A DNA stretch of 64,000 nt, taken from the sequence record MG592456.1; one strand, given 5' to 3'. This document shows, in pieces, positions 2,157-58,485 of the stretch. The notes beneath the pieces are model-generated. The model did not search any database and had not been told where the DNA came from. It worked only from the letters and a program-made list of their open reading frames with translations. Every line of letters begins with the position of its first letter. Within the stretch, counting starts at the first letter, position 1. The position numbers and the translations under genes are program-made.

Positions 2157-3284
2157 ATGAAAAACTTAAATCAATTTATGGAAGAACTTCAATTAAATGA
2201 AGTTCACGTTCGTGGTGCTAAACCGCGCAACGGGTCAAAAGTTCTTGCTAATGGTAAGAACATTTGGGTGTGGAATAACGCCCGCGAATTTCAACGACTT
2301 GCTCCGTTCATCAACCGAGAACTTGGTACTGATTTCGAAGAAGAATACGACGTTGATGACTGGTACGAAGAGGGTGCTCAAGCGGTATATGGTGAAGTTG
2401 AAAACAACAAGCTCACTCTGAACGGGTCTAGCGCATACAGACCGTCGAATACATCAGATACATTCAGAAAAACAATCAAAGCATTGAACTTGAATGGATC
2501 AAGTCGCCGAAGTCAGTCATATGACGCGAATAGCGGCGATGAAGTCGAAAACGATTTTGAAACAAGTCGATATGAGTTCAATCAAAAGCTAAGTCAAAAA
2601 CGTTTTTATCACGGGACGTCATCGAAGTATATTGAACAGACATTGAAGATGGGCTTGCGTCCATCACCCGATAAAACTCAGTTCAATGATATTGAGCACC
2701 AAGACAAAGTCTTCATTACGACTGAACTTGAAAAGGCGATGTTTCACGCGACAACCGCAGCCGAAAATACAGGTACGTTCCCTCTGATTCTTGAACTTGA
2801 ATTGCCAGATGCAGCAAAACTTGTTTCGGATTACGACGTTGTTATTGATACCATGGGTGCTGATTCTGAAGAAGCTCAAGCACTAGGCTACGATGATATT
2901 TTCTATCACGCGACTCGAAACGGGAATCACGGTAATGGTCAAAAATATGACGACATGCAGAAGAGATTCGGCAAGCGTCTTGGGCAATTGTCAACTAAAT
3001 TAGGTATATTTGGTTACAAAGGTCGAATCCCAGCAACGTTTTTCACCAAAGTGCTTGCAGATAATGACGCGATGGAAGATTCCATGCCGGATTATTACTT
3101 CAACACTAACAACGAAGAACTTGACTTCGACGAATTCGAAAAAGGTGAGGCAGCGGGGTTACGCTCGTATGATTACTGGAATGAAAATCGACCGAAAGAT
3201 TTCGTGCAAGATATAAAAGACATCTACAGCAACGTCTACGACGAATTCCAAGAGGAAGACGAAGAAGACGACTGGGACGACTAA
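2157..3284 (+). CDS. ADP-ribosyltransferase-fold protein with an internal-head-protein-like N-terminus
   Basis: FYHGTS...GLRP...KVFITT motif (HYx-type ART / KptA-like fold); N-terminus MKNLNQFMEELQLNE resembles the T4 capsid-targeting sequence; late-promoter-like CTAAATA upstream. Confidence 0.6.
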   Translation: MKNLNQFMEELQLNEVHVRGAKPRNGSKVLANGKNIWVWNNAREFQRLAPFINRELGTDFEEEYDVDDWYEEGAQAVYGEVENNKLTLNGSSAYRPSNTSDTFRKTIKALNLNGSSRRSQSYDANSGDEVENDFETSRYEFNQKLSQKRFYHGTSSKYIEQTLKMGLRPSPDKTQFNDIEHQDKVFITTELEKAMFHATTAAENTGTFPLILELELPDAAKLVSDYDVVIDTMGADSEEAQALGYDDIFYHATRNGNHGNGQKYDDMQKRFGKRLGQLSTKLGIFGYKGRIPATFFTKVLADNDAMEDSMPDYYFNTNNEELDFDEFEKGEAAGLRSYDYWNENRPKDFVQDIKDIYSNVYDEFQEEDEEDDWDD

Positions 3285-3872: not shown

Positions 3873-4583
3873 ATGGGCAAGAAAAAGCTTACTGGCGACG
3901 CAACAACATTCCGTCACGTCGAACTCATGACGCAGAATCAAGAAACGTATGCAACTGCATTGAAAGCGGCGGTTCAGCCTGACGGTAGCGATGCATTCGT
4001 ATTTGCGATTGGGTCAGCCGGTACGGGTAAAACGTGGTTGGCGACAACACTGGGTGCGGATATGTATTCTGCATTCGATTATACTCAGTTTATCATTATC
4101 AAGCCAACGATTTCATGTGGTGAAGATGTGGGGTTCTTACCGGGTACGCTTGAAGAAAAGATGGCACCTTGGATTCAAACAGTTGTTCAGCCGCTGAAGG
4201 ATCGATTGGGCACTGACAAATTCGAATGTGATTGGAATAAACGTATTCATGCTGAGCCGGTTCAATTCGTTCGTGGTAAGACATTTGATAATTGTTTTAT
4301 TGTTGTTGATGAAGCGCAGAACTTAACAAAAACTGAAGTTCAGACTATTATGACTCGTATCGGTAAAAATACGAAGATGGTATTTTGTGGTGACTTGAAG
4401 CAAAACGATCACAAGATGATTTACCGAACAGGTCAGAAAGAACTCAGTGGGCTTGCATGGGTAGTCAATGAAATTCGCACGCAACGTCGTCCGGGTATTG
4501 AAATCATCGAATTCACTAGTAAAGATGTTGTACGTTCTGGTGCGTGTAAGATGGCGCTTGAAATTTTTGAGGCGGCTCAGTAA
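3873..4583 (+). CDS. phoH: PhoH-family ATPase
   Basis: GSAGTGKT Walker A, GFLPGTLEEKM, RGKTF, VDEAQN, GDLKQ. Confidence 0.95.
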   Translation: MGKKKLTGDATTFRHVELMTQNQETYATALKAAVQPDGSDAFVFAIGSAGTGKTWLATTLGADMYSAFDYTQFIIIKPTISCGEDVGFLPGTLEEKMAPWIQTVVQPLKDRLGTDKFECDWNKRIHAEPVQFVRGKTFDNCFIVVDEAQNLTKTEVQTIMTRIGKNTKMVFCGDLKQNDHKMIYRTGQKELSGLAWVVNEIRTQRRPGIEIIEFTSKDVVRSGACKMALEIFEAAQ

Positions 4584-5785: not shown

Positions 5786-6070
5786 ATGATTGAATCAAAA
5801 AACACTACAAATGAAATTGCTCTTGAAATTGCCGCTTTCGCATCACTTTTAGTAAAACTCGGCTTCGATGAATGTGTTGAAAATCAGAAATTATTTGTGG
5901 AAATGTGTAACGAAACGGGAATTAGAACATCAACAGGCAAAGAATTCACGCAGATGTCATTTAGACAAATGTTTGCCAGACTCCCCGCTAAAACAGCGCG
6001 TGAAGTTCGTGAAATATTTTCGTGGGGTGTTGATCACCAAAACGAATCAATATTAGAAACCATAAATTAA
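5786..6070 (+). CDS. asiA: anti-sigma70 factor AsiA
   Basis: EIAAFASLLVK..VEN..F...NE.G....SFR aligns by eye with T4 AsiA (EIITVASILIK..VEN..F..NEIG...SFR); converges on the holin-position gene as in T4. Confidence 0.8.
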   Translation: MIESKNTTNEIALEIAAFASLLVKLGFDECVENQKLFVEMCNETGIRTSTGKEFTQMSFRQMFARLPAKTAREVREIFSWGVDHQNESILETIN

Positions 6071-14700: not shown

Positions 14701-16134
14701 TTAAACGTCGTAGCGCTCAACATTAACTGTTTTTAACATGATCTTGACTGGCTCAAGTTCACCGCCCAACAACGAGGTCAGGATTGACGGACTACAGCCT
14801 GATACAAGTGCAGTACCCGCAGTTCCTGTTTTAACAGGGACGTTGCCCGCTCTTGCGTGAATATTCCAGAACACTAGCTGTGGCATGTCGTAACCATGAC
14901 GAGCATAATTCGACTTAATTTCGTCGAAATTGGTTTTATTAGAGGAGCGCCACCCCGCGCTATTCGCCGTGTCGAATTCCATGTCGCTCAAGATTAGCAT
15001 CTTAGTCGGCATTTCACTCTGAGGCAAGTTAGCGCTTGTTGCTCGTTCAAGCAACACATTAAAGCAGCCGCTAATGTTAGTACTCATGTCTTCACCAGCA
15101 CGTGACATGTTGGCTAAACGAGTTTGCAAATTATCACCGATTAACTTGTGAAAGTTAGGGCGACTTGAGAATGTAACGAACTGGTCTTGGAAGACGCCTT
15201 CGTTGCGCTCTGCAATGTAGATACCAAGACTCATAGCGACGTCTTTGCAAGATACACCATCGCCATATGAGTCAGCGCCGTTAATACCACAACCCATAGA
15301 GCCTGATACATCAACTACGGGTAGAATGCGCTCGTCTGAGCCTTCCATGTAGTTCGGAAGTGCTTTCCATTGCTCATTCGCAACAACGGCATTGCCGCGA
15401 CTAACACTACGCACGACATCATATGGGTATACAGCACCCGCATTAATCTTCGCTTCGCCCTTCACAAGTGATTCGATGTAGCTAGAATACTTATCAGTTG
15501 CATTGCGACCGAACGATTTTTGATAGCGTGCTGAAGCTACAGACGGCAACTTACCAAAGTCGATCGCATCCCATTCACGCGCACACATTTTCTGCTCGAC
15601 GGTGTCTGACAATGTACTAAGAATCTTGCGCCATTGCTTTGACTTAATACCAAGAGACTTGATAGTTTTCTTAAACACATGACCGTTTGCGCTACCTTCA
15701 CGAGGGAACCACTTTGCAGCTAACGAGTTTTTATCGTTGACGATTGCATGAGTCCACAATGTGATTGCATCAGCCTCAAGATCTGTACCAAATGCACACA
15801 TCAAGTCATCGAAACGACCCAATTCTGGCACTTTAGACATCACAACACGTGCAATATCAGGGCGATTGACACACAAGCGAGTAAAGATCTTACGGAAAGT
15901 TTGACGTTCCCCAGCTCCACCGCGTACATCACGTGCCCATAGCAAGATTCGAGTTGCCAGCTCAGGATTTTCACCGAATGCTCGATCGAACATACCAAGT
16001 GACTCGTTATTACCACGCATCGCGCCAATAGTAAAAAACAAGTTTAGACACTCGTTGCCTGAAGTGCTGTGAGTCACTGCACCATTTGCGGTACGTGCAT
16101 CGTTTGTTTGCATTGCGTTTAAAAAAGCTGACAT
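14701..16134 (-). CDS. DUF2828 family protein (TROVE-like helical region plus vWA domain; Ro60-like architecture)
   Basis: RDVRGGAGER, KWFPRE, KINAGAVYPYDVV, vWA MIDAS DVSGSM, ILSDMEFD, VFWN. Confidence 0.85.
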   Translation of the reverse strand: MSAFLNAMQTNDARTANGAVTHSTSGNECLNLFFTIGAMRGNNESLGMFDRAFGENPELATRILLWARDVRGGAGERQTFRKIFTRLCVNRPDIARVVMSKVPELGRFDDLMCAFGTDLEADAITLWTHAIVNDKNSLAAKWFPREGSANGHVFKKTIKSLGIKSKQWRKILSTLSDTVEQKMCAREWDAIDFGKLPSVASARYQKSFGRNATDKYSSYIESLVKGEAKINAGAVYPYDVVRSVSRGNAVVANEQWKALPNYMEGSDERILPVVDVSGSMGCGINGADSYGDGVSCKDVAMSLGIYIAERNEGVFQDQFVTFSSRPNFHKLIGDNLQTRLANMSRAGEDMSTNISGCFNVLLERATSANLPQSEMPTKMLILSDMEFDTANSAGWRSSNKTNFDEIKSNYARHGYDMPQLVFWNIHARAGNVPVKTGTAGTALVSGCSPSILTSLLGGELEPVKIMLKTVNVERYDV

Positions 16135-16169
16135 TTTATAATTCCCTAATTTGTTTGCTGTTTAATGTC
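16130..16169 (-). promoter_or_regulatory. CAGCAA-motif leader hairpin sequestering the DUF2828 RBS and start codon
   Basis: GACAUU-AAA-CAGCAAAC-AAAUU-AGGGA(SD)-AUUAUAA-AAUGUC; the closing strand contains the AUG. Confidence 0.7.
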
Positions 16170-16913: not shown

Positions 16914-18335
16914 TTACAGTGCAGCTACGGTCAAGACAACTGCATCAGATGTCACAGAACCTTCGCTGTTGGTGTAAACAACGCGATATTCGTTAGCATC
17001 AAGACCAACATCAGTCGGATCGATAACAAGTGAATCACCAGTCTCACCATCGATGTCTGCAAAACCACTACCATCATCTACTTGCCATTGCGCATCAGGG
17101 ATTGGATATCCAGTAGCTGATGCAGTGAATGTGGCAATATCGGGTTCAGTAACAGATTCTGCAACTGGCTGCGTGTCAATGGCAGGCAATTCTAGTGCAG
17201 GATCAACGGTCAATACAACTGCATCAGATGTCACAGAGCCTTCACTGTTGGTGTAAACAACACGATATTCGTTACCATCAAGACCAACATCAGTCGGATC
17301 GATAAATAACGCATCACTAGTCTCACCATCGATGTCTGCAAAACCACTACCTTCATCTACTTGCCATTGACTAGTAGGAATCGGATATCCCGTAGCTGAT
17401 GCAGTGAATGTAGCAGCATCAGGGGCATTAACAGATTCTGCTACTGGCTGTGTGTCAATGACCGGCAATTCTAGTGCAGGATCAACTTCTAGTTCAACTG
17501 CGTCAGAGAATACTTCACCTGCATCATTGAACCATCGAGCAGCAACTAAGTAGCCATCCATTGATTCTTCTGCAACGAATGTCAATTCAGGCTCGCGATG
17601 ATCATCTAATGGGTGAGACGTTGACCCGCCATCATCAGAGTAATACCAGCGAACTTCTGGAGTTGGTCGACCGGTTGCGGCACTAGTGAACGTTACTGTT
17701 TCACCCGCATTTGTGTTAACTTCAGCCGGCTGTAGCGTAACGACAGGCAACAACTGAACTGTTAATACAGCGTCTTCGCTCGTTACAACGCCCTCACTGT
17801 TAGTCCATGTCATTGTATACACGTTTCCGTCGTCAGCATCCGCCGCAGTAAACGAATAAGCGGTATTAACCTCACCGATGATGTCAACACCATCTACTTG
17901 CCATTGACCGGTTGGCTCAGGATTGCCATACGCTTCACAAGTGAAACTCACGTTCTCGCCGTCAACGACAGTCATTGAGACTGGCTGTTCGGTGATGATA
18001 GGTAGCGATGGTGCCGCAGTTGGCACAACGTCAATACGAAAGAATCGACTGTTGTGGGACTCGCGCACTAGCAGTGAACTAACTTCACCTTCCAATGCCC
18101 CACCAATCACCTCTTTAACCCACTCAGGGCTACCCGCTTCTGTAATCCCGACTGCAATCATCTTGTCAGAAATTTCTCGATACGGCTGTTGAATGTTTTT
18201 ATACGCAACTACTTGACCATAGTTGAATCGTGTTTTTGATAATGGATACTTAGGATATTCTACCTTGATTGCTGCCAATTCAGCATCATCGATGACAATT
18301 GCCATCCCTAGGTTATCATCAATAGGTGTACTCAT
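16914..18335 (-). CDS. Ig-like (I-set) repeat virion surface protein, Hoc-like
   Basis: four repeats of P.I..QP....V..G..ATF...A.G.P.P..QW...Y.....N..G; the last two are near-identical at DNA level. Confidence 0.8.
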   Translation of the reverse strand: MSTPIDDNLGMAIVIDDAELAAIKVEYPKYPLSKTRFNYGQVVAYKNIQQPYREISDKMIAVGITEAGSPEWVKEVIGGALEGEVSSLLVRESHNSRFFRIDVVPTAAPSLPIITEQPVSMTVVDGENVSFTCEAYGNPEPTGQWQVDGVDIIGEVNTAYSFTAADADDGNVYTMTWTNSEGVVTSEDAVLTVQLLPVVTLQPAEVNTNAGETVTFTSAATGRPTPEVRWYYSDDGGSTSHPLDDHREPELTFVAEESMDGYLVAARWFNDAGEVFSDAVELEVDPALELPVIDTQPVAESVNAPDAATFTASATGYPIPTSQWQVDEGSGFADIDGETSDALFIDPTDVGLDGNEYRVVYTNSEGSVTSDAVVLTVDPALELPAIDTQPVAESVTEPDIATFTASATGYPIPDAQWQVDDGSGFADIDGETGDSLVIDPTDVGLDANEYRVVYTNSEGSVTSDAVVLTVAAL

Positions 18336-21512: not shown

Positions 21513-21588
21513 TGGAGCTGGTACGCAGAATCGAACTGCGACCTAAGGATTTGCAATCCCCTATCCTACCTGATTAGACCATAGGAGC
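21513..21588 (-). tRNA. trnC: tRNA-Cys(GCA) with two C:C mismatches in the acceptor stem
   Basis: GGGGA-TTGCAAA-TCCTT, U73, CCA; the 5' end overlaps the endonuclease ORF. Confidence 0.75.
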
Positions 21589-22197
21589 ATGTTTACAATT
21601 ATCAAAGTGCCACCGTTTCATAACACCGCCCTTGCCAACTTTACCACAATGAGGACACGTGACTTCATCAATCGAGTGTTCTTCATAATGCCTCTTCAAA
21701 CTCTCTGAAATTTTTTGCTTTTGTGATTCAGTCTTATCTTGTTTGCCAATCTTTATACCATGTTCGACCGCCGCAGCATAACGCTCTTCGCCACGTTTTA
21801 CCCAATAATTATCAGCGTACTTCTCTCTGATTTTATCACTCACCGCACGACCAGACAACGTTTTAGAAATTTTCGCCTTAGATTCATCAGTGTGTGGTAT
21901 CCCACTACGATTAAGATGGTCGAACCCACCTTCACCACCCAACTTCAGATTATATGTCATGGAGTTTTCTACAAACTCACGATCAACATACACAGCCTCA
22001 CGCTCGTACATTTCATCAGAACTGTCACATTGTTCTAGAATTTCACACTCGAAGCTATCAACGCCATACTTGTTAATTGCACGTTTCAGAAGCTTACCGG
22101 ATCCGATATACCCATCTTCTAGGTCTTCGGTTTTGTGTGCTCCGATGTAGATCTTACCATTGGTTTTATTAGTGGTTTTATAAACAATATAATACAT
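21574..22197 (-). mobile_element. free-standing Seg-like GIY-YIG homing endonuclease gene with NUMOD3 and C-terminal CPHC..RWHFDNC domain
   Basis: IVY-KTTN..NGKIYIG..K...GYIGSG..L..AI.KYG..F..EIL; inserted in the tRNA cluster as T4 segB is. Confidence 0.85.
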
Positions 22198-24438: not shown

Positions 24439-24543
24439 TGAGTGTGTATTTACCAGCGCACCAGCGTGCATACCAAGCACTGCGAGAATCGAACTCGCGC
24501 CGTTCGTGTAAAAGACGAATTTGTTGTTTGCTGTAAACACTCA
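24439..24543 (-). ncRNA. circularly permuted tRNA mimic (YrlA-like) with CAGCAA motif and Lys anticodon loop
   Basis: terminal helix UGAGUGU/ACACUCA, UUA-CAGCAAAC, UUCGU-CUUUUAC-ACGAA, GCGAG-UUCGAUU-CUCGC T arm, loop-closed GUGC/GCAC acceptor-like stem, D-like arm; no CCA. Confidence 0.8.
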
Positions 24544-25721: not shown

Positions 25722-25747
25722 ATACCCCCCTAGATTTTGATTATAAC

Positions 25748-25805
25748 AGAATGCGTTTTGCTTGAAAGCCAATTTTCAAATTTTGTTGTTTGCTGAATAC
25801 ATTCT
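25748..25805 (-). ncRNA. minimal CAGCAA-motif RNA with Glu-type anticodon loop
   Basis: AGAAUGU-AUU-CAGCAAAC...UUGG-CUUUCAA-GCAA...GCAUUCU. Confidence 0.7.
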
Positions 25806-26003: not shown

Positions 26004-26078
26004 TGGCGCTGATGGAGAATTTCGAAATCTCGACCTGAGAGTTAACAGCTCCCTGCTCTGCCTCTGAGCTACATCAGC
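26004..26078 (-). tRNA. trnN: tRNA-Asn(GTT)
   Basis: GGGAG-CTGTTAA-CTCTC, G73, CCA. Confidence 0.95.
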
Positions 26079-29230: not shown

Positions 29231-29354
29231 TGGTGGAGAGAGCGGGATTCGAACCACGCGACCGAAAGATTTACTTAGTTAAAAGTTTGCAGTAGGCATT
29301 CTTGTCAGAATACACATAACATTCTTTTGCTCTACCAGACTGAGCTATCTCTCC
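29231..29354 (-). ncRNA. tRNA body with CAGCAA-type insert in the anticodon arm
   Basis: GGAGAGA/UCUCUCC-A-CCA, D arm, bulged T arm; insert GUAUUCU-GACA-AGAAUGC-CUA-CUGCAAAC. Confidence 0.75.
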
Positions 29355-29402
29355 ATTTGCAGCGCTGTGTTTACTGCATGAACACAGCGCCAATACTTCT
29401 CA

Positions 29403-29588: not shown

Positions 29589-29732
29589 GAGAGTGCATTG
29601 AGCGGGGTGCAGGAATCGAACCTGCGTCACGATCTTTGAAGGATATGCGTTTTGGTTGCTGAATACAAGCTTGTCAGCTTGCGTTTAGCTACGTGTGTTA
29701 TCCACTACACCAACCCCGCTCAATGCACTCTC
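29589..29732 (-). ncRNA. tRNA body with CAGCAA insert, UCA anticodon-like loop and 20-bp extended acceptor helix
   Basis: GCGGGGU/ACCCCGC, D and T arms; GCAAGCU-GACA-AGCUUGU-AUU-CAGCAACC; AUC-CUUCAAA-GAU; no CCA. Confidence 0.75.
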
Positions 29733-29887: not shown

Positions 29888-30035
29888 GTTCATCTTCAGC
29901 GAAGAGACAGAAACGATGAACCTAGTCTGCTTAATCTGTATGAATGATATCAACTTTTCAGTAGAAGTCAAACACTTTTAAAATATTTATTCATCAAATC
30001 AAGAGTTTATTTCGTCTCTCGACTTGATGAATTAC

Positions 30036-30064
30036 ATTCTACACCCATTTTGAAGATAGTCAAC
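30036..30064 (-). promoter_or_regulatory. early/sigma70 promoter driving the RNA cluster
   Basis: GTTGAC-N17-TAGAAT; similar promoters recur at ~29950, 26700, 26200, 23300, 22460 and 21320. Confidence 0.7.
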
Positions 30065-30080
30065 AACTATCTTCAAATAA

Positions 30081-30332
30081 TTACGTTTGAATGATAATGC
30101 CGCTTTCAGTTTCACCTGCTTCTAGGCATTGATGCTTGATCTGTAGCTGCGTAACGGCAGCTTGCAATTCGTTAATTGCACGATCATACAGCTTCATGTT
30201 TCGCCCTTGCGAGGCAATTTGGTCAGCTTGCATGCCGATGATATATGTCAACAGTACAATGTTTTCATCCGTTGTAAGTTCTTCACCGGCATCATACTTG
30301 TCAACAACGGCTTTAGTAGATAGATCACTCAT
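30081..30332 (-). CDS. hypothetical coiled-coil protein
   Basis: ORF overlapping the gp57B stop. Confidence 0.65.
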   Translation of the reverse strand: MSDLSTKAVVDKYDAGEELTTDENIVLLTYIIGMQADQIASQGRNMKLYDRAINELQAAVTQLQIKHQCLEAGETESGIIIQT

Positions 30333-30780
30333 TGTTTTCAATCCAATTCAAATCTAGTGGCTCAACGTACTCATCTACTAGACGAATATCGAGATTAACA
30401 AATAGTGGAGTTATTTTGTCATCGTATGACAGCGTAACGTGCGGGGAGTAATCAGGGTAGTCATGTGTCCCACCAGCAGATATCAAGTCATCATGACGCT
30501 CTGAGAGCGCATCACAACTAAGTTTAGCAACGACAGCGTATTTGCCGTCTTGCGTCTTCCAGCAGTCCACATAATTAACCTTTGCTTGATAAGTGTTATC
30601 AGTCGCAGGTACATCTAGTTGTTTACGACTATACAATATAGTCGCGTGGAATTGCTTTGAATCTAATGGATTAGTTAGACGAAGAACTCGTTGCAGAGTG
30701 ATTAACTCTTGTTGACTCGCTTCGTCTAACTTAACACCGACATAAGTTCCCTGAGTCTCATTGTACTCAGAAAGATTCAT
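30325..30780 (-). CDS. 57B: gp57B, 2H phosphoesterase-like
   Basis: two HxT/S motifs (FHATILYS, PHVTLSY); T4 gene order. Confidence 0.9.
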   Translation of the reverse strand: MNLSEYNETQGTYVGVKLDEASQQELITLQRVLRLTNPLDSKQFHATILYSRKQLDVPATDNTYQAKVNYVDCWKTQDGKYAVVAKLSCDALSERHDDLISAGGTHDYPDYSPHVTLSYDDKITPLFVNLDIRLVDEYVEPLDLNWIENNE

Positions 30781-31800: not shown

Positions 31801-32081
31801 TCATTCTCTAATATTTCTAATTTCTCTAAGAACACTAAAATCACTAATTCTACTAAGATGAGACGGAATTTTTCCACCACAGCCAAATCCTTTCGCTTCG
31901 CTTGATTTCTTCAGACACAAGAGTAATTGATCTTCAATTCATCATTGGGTCATGTTCATTCTCTAATTTCTCTAATATTTCTAATTTCTCTAAGAACACT
32001 AAAATCACTAATTCTACTAAGATGAGACGGAATTTTTCCGCCTCGCCAAATCCTTTCGCTTCGCTTGGTTTCTTCTAGACA
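31801..32081 (+). repeat. two tandem copies of a ~110-bp non-coding repeat (third copy, inverted, at 58355-58485)
   Basis: CTAATTTCTCTAAGAACACTAAAATCACTAATTCTACTAAGATGAGACGGAATTTTTCC...CTTCGCTTG..TTCTTC at ~31801-31917 and ~31950-32081. Confidence 0.95.
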
Positions 32082-58354: not shown

Positions 58355-58485
58355 CTTTTTTATGTCTAGAAGAAACCAAGCGAAGCGAAAGGATTTGGCG
58401 AGGCGGAAAAATTCCGTCTCATCTTAGTAGAATTAGTGATTTTAGTGTTCTTAGAGAAATTAGAGATCTTAGAGATATTAGTGTT
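58355..58485 (-). repeat. third (inverted) copy of the ~110-bp repeat
   Basis: reverse complement is identical to ~31981-32085 over about 105 bp. Confidence 0.95.

Follow-up and report, generated by a model that had tools for sequence, protein, structure and literature searches.

Is a phage gene that has the body and the CCA end of a tRNA, and that carries about 50 nt within its anticodon stem, an intron-containing tRNA, a broken one or an RNA of another kind? The question is raised by element A, which lies at positions 29231-29354 on the minus strand of a 64-kb stretch of DNA (hereafter the window) that is identical to Vibrio phage 1.081.O._10N.286.52.C2 (MG592456.1), a KVP40-like Schizotequatrovirus. 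Element A is located at the upstream end of a cluster of 26 ordinary tRNA genes (minus strand, 20.9-28.5 kb, detected with ARAGORN and Rfam), just 3' of the block containing genes 1, 57A and 57B. It is labelled in GenBank as a 121-nt tRNA-Asn(GTT), as had been anticipated in the initial annotation of this DNA, according to which software would take the insert for an intron; ARAGORN run on the window made no call for it. The KVP40 orthologue is annotated tRNA-Pseudo-4, and the papers on phages phi-pp2, phi-Grn1 and phi-St2 mention only 'pseudo-forms' (PMC3468402, PMC5107563). The evidence presented here suggests that element A is probably an unspliced, non-decoding tRNA mimic of the Y RNA type and the predicted partner of a DUF2828 protein encoded by the same phage. 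The known design recognised in it is most likely that of Y RNA and Ro60, in the form of the YrlA-type tRNA mimics, built the other way round.

The Rfam tRNA model (RF00005) matches 29234-29354 (minus strand) with 52.1 bits (E 2.7e-8) over its full length (positions 1-71), leaving a 48-nt insertion in the anticodon loop. The acceptor stem (GGAGAGA/UCUCUCC) has 7 bp and is followed by the discriminator A73 and by a genome-encoded CCA 3' end (29231-29233, minus strand). The D arm and the T loop (UUCGAAU) are standard, and a variable loop, a T arm and U8, A14 and G18/G19 are present. The anticodon stem pairs AAAGA (RNA positions 28-32) with UCUUU (86-90) over 5 bp and encloses 53 nt where a loop of 7 nt would be usual. 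The match and the sequence agree with the initial annotation, which had described a normal acceptor stem, D arm and CCA and some 50 nt inside AAAGA/UCUUU; the stretch GUAUUCU-GACA-AGAAUGC-CUA-CUGCAAAC within those 53 nt is also exactly as it was written there. On its 3' side element A has a flank similar to that of the genuine tRNA genes in the cluster (repeat family D11). Since its shape is that of a tRNA, element A would probably be released, like its neighbours, from the early transcript of the tRNA cluster by RNase P and trimming at the 3' end, and keep its CCA end.

Orthologues of element A occur in about 50 KVP40-like phages and also in the Cronobacter phages S13 and LPCS28. In an alignment of nine sequences the acceptor stem, the D arm and the CCA are invariant from the Vibrio phages through S13, and compensatory changes are seen at pair 7-66 and in the T stem. 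The tRNA body is nearly invariant across phages that share only about 75% identity in the flanking DNA, and in S13 element A is still 73% identical overall. This pattern indicates a tRNA body under selection. It also bears on the possibility that element A is a dead tRNA gene broken by a short repeated element, the pseudogene of the KVP40 annotation. The labels tRNA-Pseudo-3, -4 and -5 given to the KVP40 orthologues would agree with this, as would the 'pseudo-forms' of the papers cited above and the fact that the module carried by the insert is a repeated element. A dead gene is nevertheless hard to reconcile with a body that is nearly invariant between diverged flanks and recognisable even in S13, with compensatory stem changes in both body and insert and with an encoded CCA that has been kept, and element A can hardly be a pseudogene.

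The insert harbours a module (29285-29322, minus strand) made of a lead-in AUGUUAUGU, a hairpin with a GACA loop, the linker CUA and CUGCAAAC; the hairpin GUAUUCU/AGAAUGC with its loop occupies 29296-29313 and CUGCAAAC occupies 29285-29292, both on the minus strand. Twenty copies of the module align without gaps. They share a layout in which an A-rich lead-in (consensus AAAC) precedes a 7-bp hairpin; this is capped by GNNA (GACA, GAUA, GUAA, GUCA or GUUA) and followed by a linker of 3 nt (AUU or AUG) and by CWGCA(A). Among these 20 copies both-sided changes occur at 7 of the 7 hairpin pairs, and 97% of the hairpin cells are paired; shuffles reach 72%, and sliding the partner column leaves no more than 48%. 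The module is more than a product of chance. In the window, a covariance model of it (R1) matched only element A (29282-29323, 37.2 bits, E 3.5e-6) and a second tRNA-like RNA, element B (E 1.2e-10). Over whole genomes R1 matched only within tRNA-like clusters, twice in this phage, five times and once weakly in KVP40, twice in S13 and twice in a complete 233-kb IMG/VR phage; it gave no match over the whole T4 genome, which also has no DUF2828 gene. In these whole-record searches the closed module was confined to the tRNA-like clusters of DUF2828-carrying phages. It is borne by at least five different RNA bodies (elements A and B, KVP40 pseudo-tRNAs 3 and 5, and S13_2), several of them without an anticodon-like context, and in Rfam 15 no family other than tRNA reached its threshold for these RNAs. 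From the comparison of its copies the insert appears to be a conserved structured module, neither junk nor an intron.

Directly upstream of element A (29361-29396, minus strand) there is a 10-bp hairpin (GCGCUGUGUU ... AACACAGCGC) followed by UGCAAAU, a sequence similar to CUGCAAA of the module but lacking the linker.

The intron explanation deserves attention of its own, as the GenBank label, of the tRNAscan type, gives tRNA-Asn with anticodon GTT. Element A would then be a genuine gene for tRNA-Asn(GUU), and a small intron located at position 37/38 would be removed to yield a decoding tRNA. The first seven nucleotides past the stem are A-U-GUU-A-U, with U33 and A37 in place, GUU is present in 8 of 8 Vibrio-phage orthologues, and RNA ligases are encoded by these phages (literature on KVP40 Rnl2). 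Moreover, tRNAs with group I introns (bacterial) or bulge-helix-bulge (BHB) introns (archaeal and eukaryal) likewise carry extra sequence at or near cloverleaf position 37/38. Unlike those, element A has neither a group I core nor a BHB, and its insert is conserved, covaries and is present outside tRNAs. No Rfam intron, ribozyme or riboswitch match was obtained between 26700 and 30400 at E values up to 10, no 3-nt/4-bp/3-nt BHB motif could be drawn at the insert junctions on inspection of the folds, and the insert, at only 46-48 nt, is far below the size of a group I intron; the earlier statement that the insert is free of group I and BHB features is upheld by all three. The covariation and conservation of the insert exceed the needs of an excised spacer, and the same insert is found in RNAs without an anticodon context and free-standing beside DUF2828 genes.

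The supposed anticodon loop argues in the same direction. It reads AUGUUAU in element A, ACGUUGA in K566 and GUAGAAA in S13, and the context A-U-GUU-A-U is not kept, with C33 in K566 and UAGAAAA in S13_1. Element A thus has the cloverleaf of a decoding tRNA but not its 7-nt loop with a conserved anticodon. In addition, the phage already has an ordinary tRNA-Asn(GUU) at 26004-26078 (minus strand, ARAGORN and Rfam), which makes a second, spliced one unnecessary, and no splicing endonuclease is to our knowledge known in these hosts. An intron-bearing tRNA-Asn is for these reasons very unlikely, and element A is more plausibly an RNA that keeps its insert. At the KVP40 locus orthologous to element A, two contig sets showed no joints.

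A partner for such an RNA is suggested by the gene at 14701-16134 (minus strand), which encodes a 477-aa protein with the Pfam domains DUF2828 and DUF7788, the only such protein of the window. An AlphaFold2 model of the DUF2828 protein made from 30 homologues (pLDDT 82.6, pTM 0.83) was compared with the PDB by Foldseek, and all top ten matches were Ro60 (E 5e-8 to 6e-6, TM 0.47-0.64 over the full length), including the Xenopus and human proteins and the Ro60 of Thermus phage phiLo; the next matches were isolated vWA domains with E >0.01. When DUF2828 clusters were skipped, the nearest ESM Atlas clusters were TROVE with vWA_Ro60. The protein is therefore predicted to have the Ro60 fold, a HEAT-repeat ring with a C-terminal vWA domain, and in the alignment of 30 sequences the motif DxSxS (D275, S277, S279) is invariant. 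The structure model was needed to see this link because phmmer and hmmsearch against the PDB gave at best E 0.087, with the phiLo TROVE protein; Pfam TROVE (PF05731), searched at E up to 0.01, found nothing in the three phage genomes, and the controls responded. The family is named 'RNA-binding protein' in PHROG 850 and its homologues are found in 710 phage records and among metagenomic proteins (>7,900), and they include mycobacteriophage proteins annotated as 'Ro-like RNA binding protein'. One of these, from Lolly9, consists of DUF2828 and DUF7788 by Pfam. Literature searches returned no paper on the function of DUF2828, nor on the pseudo-tRNAs of KVP40-like phages as Y RNAs.

The module is linked to the genes of this family in a second, open-ended form, in which the order is helix 5' strand, NUU, CWGCAA, interior, A-rich stretch, helix 3' strand and GAYA(A). 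The initial annotation had proposed that the closed copy of element A is related to the free-standing ones by circular permutation. The strand order, taken chiefly from related loci, bears this out: the open-ended form is the closed module cut in its cap, and the permutation is real. A strict pattern of the module, open or closed, was searched in 80 IMG/VR loci around DUF2828 genes (938 kb). It matched 29 times on the strand of the gene, in 26 of the 80 loci, and not once on the opposite strand, and most of the matches lie either 207-260 nt past the stop codon or just upstream of the start codon, at a distance of 13-14 nt. When candidates were selected by the helix and CNGCA alone, so that the flanks were unselected, the combination of an A-rich strand, a G after the 3' strand and a 5' strand starting with RG was present in 50 of 214 sense candidates versus 1 of 173 antisense ones. 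Looser variants of the module occur in further DUF2828 loci. In S13, a homologue 49% identical to the DUF2828 protein of the window is encoded about 500 nt upstream of two module-bearing tRNA-like genes, and the same arrangement is found in an S13-like contig. The gene of Lolly9 is followed by three open CAGCAA modules, and the middle one holds a tRNA domain like that of YrlA, with T arm, D arm and a closed acceptor (Rfam YrlA 37.7 bits). Long open forms with the layout of YrlA, in which T arm, closed acceptor hairpin and D arm stand inside the module helix, are found in loci L059, L090, L072 and L100; those at L059 3266-3380 and L090 ~5870-6000 end directly before the start codon, and L072 has several copies.

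The module also reaches into the mRNA of the DUF2828 protein itself. In the leaders, modules adjoining the Shine-Dalgarno (SD) sequence were found in 12 of 76 loci versus 1.3% of background windows, and in many unrelated phages the 3' strand of a leader mini module runs into the SD. The window has a mini open module of this kind at 16130-16169 (minus strand), GACAUU-AAA-CAGCAAAC ... (SD AGGGAA) ... AAUGUC, in which the 3' strand of the helix GACAUU/AAUGUC contains the AUG start codon. The arrangement is the same in KVP40 and VH7D, and the helix is thermodynamically weak on its own. These copies in the mRNA leaders suggest translational autorepression, and the leader module would probably let the DUF2828 protein repress its own synthesis.

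Among the loci analysed, one in a 465-kb IMG/VR contig gave a group I intron match just above threshold (L058 8125-8333, plus strand, 51.5 bits), about 750 nt downstream of the DUF2828 gene and near a tmRNA-like fragment.

The bacterial YrlA RNAs mimic tRNAs, and their genes adjoin those of Ro60 orthologues; in Mycobacterium smegmatis YrlA is cleaved by RNase P and acquires CCA (PMC4201824). They have been likened to a tRNA that is circularly permuted and has no free CCA end, and a possible origin of YrlA from a dimeric tRNA precursor was proposed by Wang et al. (bioRxiv 10.1101/312249). Phages are also known to take part in this system, as the Ro60 of Thermus phage phiLo binds phage Y-like RNAs and the host PNPase in vitro (PMC12135203), and in a P100-like Listeria phage abundant RNAs near an Rsr-like gene have been put forward as Y RNAs (PMC12282133). 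Element A shares with the YrlA RNAs bound by Rsr (RF02553; PMC4201824, bioRxiv 10.1101/312249) an L-shaped tRNA-like domain in which the anticodon stem, or its equivalent, is extended by a helix for protein binding that has an asymmetric internal loop. In both cases there are several RNAs per genome. The pairing with a gene for a Ro60-fold protein with HEAT ring and vWA domain is comparable in part: a YrlA gene is usually found within a few kb of it on the same strand, and the module RNAs share its strand but lie 13 kb away in this window, about 500 nt away in S13 and near it in 26 of the 80 DUF2828 loci. The topology is different: YrlA has both its ends in the protein-binding helix and a closed acceptor hairpin, whereas in element A the helix is closed by the GNNA cap, the 7-bp acceptor stem is open and CCA is encoded. 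The motifs differ as well, being NUU-CWGCAA with an A-rich opposite strand in the module and GNCGAA(N)G in YrlA, and the partner belongs in Pfam to DUF2828/DUF7788 here and to TROVE for YrlA. Apart from the permutation, element A fits the YrlA/Ro60 design, and this is why it is read as a Y-RNA-type partner of the DUF2828 protein. Judged by the order of its parts it would be the un-permuted, tRNA-ordered version of a YrlA-type RNA.

Three further comparisons can be made. The processed Y RNA with tRNA-like 5' and 3' ends resembles element A in its CCA, its 7-bp acceptor stem and its retained Ro-binding helix, but it consists of two base-paired pieces with both helix and acceptor open, whereas element A is a single chain with a genome-encoded CCA. 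The phiLo Ro60 with Yrl1 and Yrl2 (PMC12135203; PDB 9KOP, 9L5Y) likewise combines a phage Ro60-fold protein with phage Y-like RNAs adjoining its gene; unlike here, the protein is a canonical TROVE protein and the RNAs are open stem-bulge-stem structures with a CGAA motif and without a described tRNA-shaped body with CCA. Permuted tRNA genes exist in red and green algae and in one archaeon (cited in bioRxiv 10.1101/312249), where tRNA shapes also occur in both gene orders with ends at the acceptor or the anticodon stem. Those genes are precursors of ordinary decoding tRNAs, whereas in the present case each of the two permutations seems to be an end product with a protein-binding module at its core.

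Over the elements described here, the Rfam YrlA model gives 28-38 bits in matches that span neighbours, compared with a gathering score of 69 bits, and part of this signal is simply due to two adjacent tRNA-like bodies. Because the motif differs and the YrlA scores are below 69 bits, element A is not a member of RF02553 as defined. The similarity of AGAAUGC in element A to CGAAUGC in the YrlA consensus was considered as homology and rejected, these being ordinary covarying helix positions in the orthologues. In KVP40 and V05 (L002 4104-4168 and L008 1432-1551) the YrlA model bridges two adjacent module-bearing genes, taking the 3' half of the first and the 5' half of the next, and this junction arrangement is the one, a dimeric tRNA precursor, from which YrlA could have evolved in the proposal of Wang et al.

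Several observations weigh against the reading of element A as a Y-RNA-type partner of the DUF2828 protein. The motif GNCGAA(N)G of Rsr-bound Y RNAs is absent from the module, which has the conserved CWGCAA instead, and element A itself gets no YrlA score. In this phage 13 kb separate element A from the DUF2828 gene, though both are on the same strand; a strict module lies within 6 kb in only 26 of the 80 DUF2828 loci, and a large clade (L013-L043) has no module near the DUF2828 gene. No reads were found at the orthologous KVP40 locus in two RNA-seq runs carrying the same species label. Moreover AUGUUA or ACGUUG is kept at the place of the anticodon loop in 8 of 8 Vibrio-phage orthologues, for which reason a residual anticodon-like function or a recent descent from tRNA-Asn is possible.

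Some of these points would be explained if the module were functional with a partner other than DUF2828. It could serve processing or stability, be bound by some other protein of phage or host, or act as a decoy for host anticodon nucleases or other tRNA-targeting defences, its co-location with DUF2828 genes reflecting shared regulation only. The 13 kb between element A and the gene, the majority of DUF2828 loci without a strict module nearby, the difference from the published Ro60-binding motif (PMC4201824) and the position of these RNAs inside tRNA clusters, where decoy or repair functions make sense, all agree with it. Shared regulation accounts less well for a module that stands in the DUF2828 mRNA leader itself, by the SD or the start codon, in many unrelated phages, and for a strand bias of 29 to 0 that tracks the orientation of the gene. 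The module is also absent from T4, which has no DUF2828, and the Ro60 fold predicts exactly such an RNA partner. A different partner thus seems unlikely, although it is the most serious of the alternatives. The 'protein-tethered tRNA mimic' tied to DUF2828 that had been suggested for element A from the start is the best reading, as the comparative evidence ties the module to the DUF2828 protein and this protein has the predicted Ro60 fold.

For this Y-RNA-type RNA the following scheme can be proposed. The anticodon stem would continue into an asymmetric internal loop, with the A-rich stretch on its 5' side and NUU-CWGCAA on its 3' side, and then into the 7-bp helix capped by GNNA, and the module so formed would be the recognition site for the Ro60-like DUF2828/DUF7788 ring protein. 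With the module docked on the protein, the tRNA-shaped body may protrude as a handle for factors that recognise tRNAs. Candidates for these factors are PNPase, as in RYPER complexes, enzymes of tRNA end processing or repair, and host nucleases that target tRNAs. A bolder and rather doubtful extension is that element A, besides being a Y RNA, forms a working tRNA end, CCA-tailed and perhaps aminoacylated as the initial annotation had considered, and couples the Ro60-like ring to the tRNA-handling machinery; element A has no G3:U70 pair, no long variable arm and none of the usual anticodon identity elements. If this were true, the machinery coupled could be EF-Tu, the synthetases, the CCA-adding enzyme or the ribosome, or host anticodon nucleases could be trapped. 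Element A would then represent the missing un-permuted form, Y RNAs would have arisen from tRNAs through a protein-binding helix inserted into the anticodon loop, and the CWGCAA module and DUF2828 would define a large family of phage ribonucleoproteins.

Conservation of Y RNAs and Ro60 extends from bacteria to humans. A natural Y-type RNA with real tRNA ends, accompanied by permuted copies in the same genome, would offer a handle on both the purpose of the tRNA-like domain of bacterial Y RNAs and the origin of these RNAs, and element A supports a tRNA origin of Y RNAs by insertion into the anticodon loop. The reading can also account for the 'pseudo-tRNAs' of KVP40-like phages and for false calls of 'tRNA-Asn with intron', and it gives DUF2828, a very common phage family, a candidate RNA partner and a likely autoregulatory site. 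The helix followed by NUU-CWGCAA, with an A-rich opposite strand, is a signature by which such RNAs can be searched. Notable features are the tRNA topology with CCA and a widespread module that goes with DUF2828 proteins and is unlisted in Rfam 15.

Element B (29589-29732, minus strand; R1 54.2 bits and orthologues) carries its module at 29651-29692. It has a T arm and a D-like arm, and in place of the 7-bp acceptor stem a perfect 20-bp terminal helix without CCA; its minimum free energy fold has -63.9 kcal/mol and its GenBank label is 'tRNA-OTHER'. The terminal helix covaries in K566 and F86 and may be a processing site of the RNase III type or an alternative closure of the tRNA-like domain. 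Upstream of elements B and A two sigma-70-like promoters were recognised at 29944-30063 (minus strand, consensus matches only), and no terminator-like site was found on the minus strand between them and the tRNA cluster.

Phage T4 also has small stable RNAs of about 120-140 nt, species 1 and 2 (rnaC and rnaD). They are similar to elements A and B in size and in their place at the end of a tRNA cluster, and rnaC has a T-arm-like hairpin. Unlike elements A and B, however, they have no module on inspection and no R1 match, and T4 has no DUF2828. As they share only synteny and size, the T4 RNAs (L011 2909-3172, minus strand) were rejected as homologues.

Two more open copies of the module were located in the window by the motif scan. 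The first (24439-24543, minus strand; UGAGUGU-UUA-CAGCAAAC ... T arm ... AAAUAC-ACACUCA-GAUU) has a tRNA-like interior with a T arm, which gives a weak Rfam tRNA match (24474-24542, 34.9 bits), and its conservation in nt-1 and CZ01 is limited to the first 37 nt. The second is short (25744-25805, minus strand; AGAAUGU-AUU-CAGCAAAC ... AAAAC-GCAUUCU-GUUA), folds no better than shuffles, has no orthologue that could be found among sequenced phages and overlaps a promoter-like TATAAT. Since they are poorly conserved in other sequenced phages and one stands over a promoter-like site, both are regarded as tentative.

Other features of the window were noted. Within the tRNA cluster there is a gene similar to GIY-YIG / NUMOD3 homing endonucleases (21574-22197, minus strand), which can be compared to segB in T4. 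The gene at 30325-30780 (minus strand), annotated as 57B or 'RNA ligase / cyclic nucleotide phosphodiesterase', matches Pfam Acb1, an anti-CBASS 2H phosphodiesterase (E 7e-44). Two 75-nt direct repeats (31804-31878 and 31968-32042), 99% identical and 164 nt apart, are intergenic and placed upstream of the dNMP kinase gene, and a related 31-nt piece is found at 58439-58469. On the plus strand, the gene at 2157-3284 has a weak match to the PARP catalytic domain (E 1.5e-5, just under the Pfam cut-off), and that at 3873-4583 encodes a PhoH-like ATPase. Finally, the gene at 16914-18335 (minus strand) encodes a 473-aa protein with four immunoglobulin-like domains and contains a 279-nt tandem duplication (16927-17484, 89% identical).

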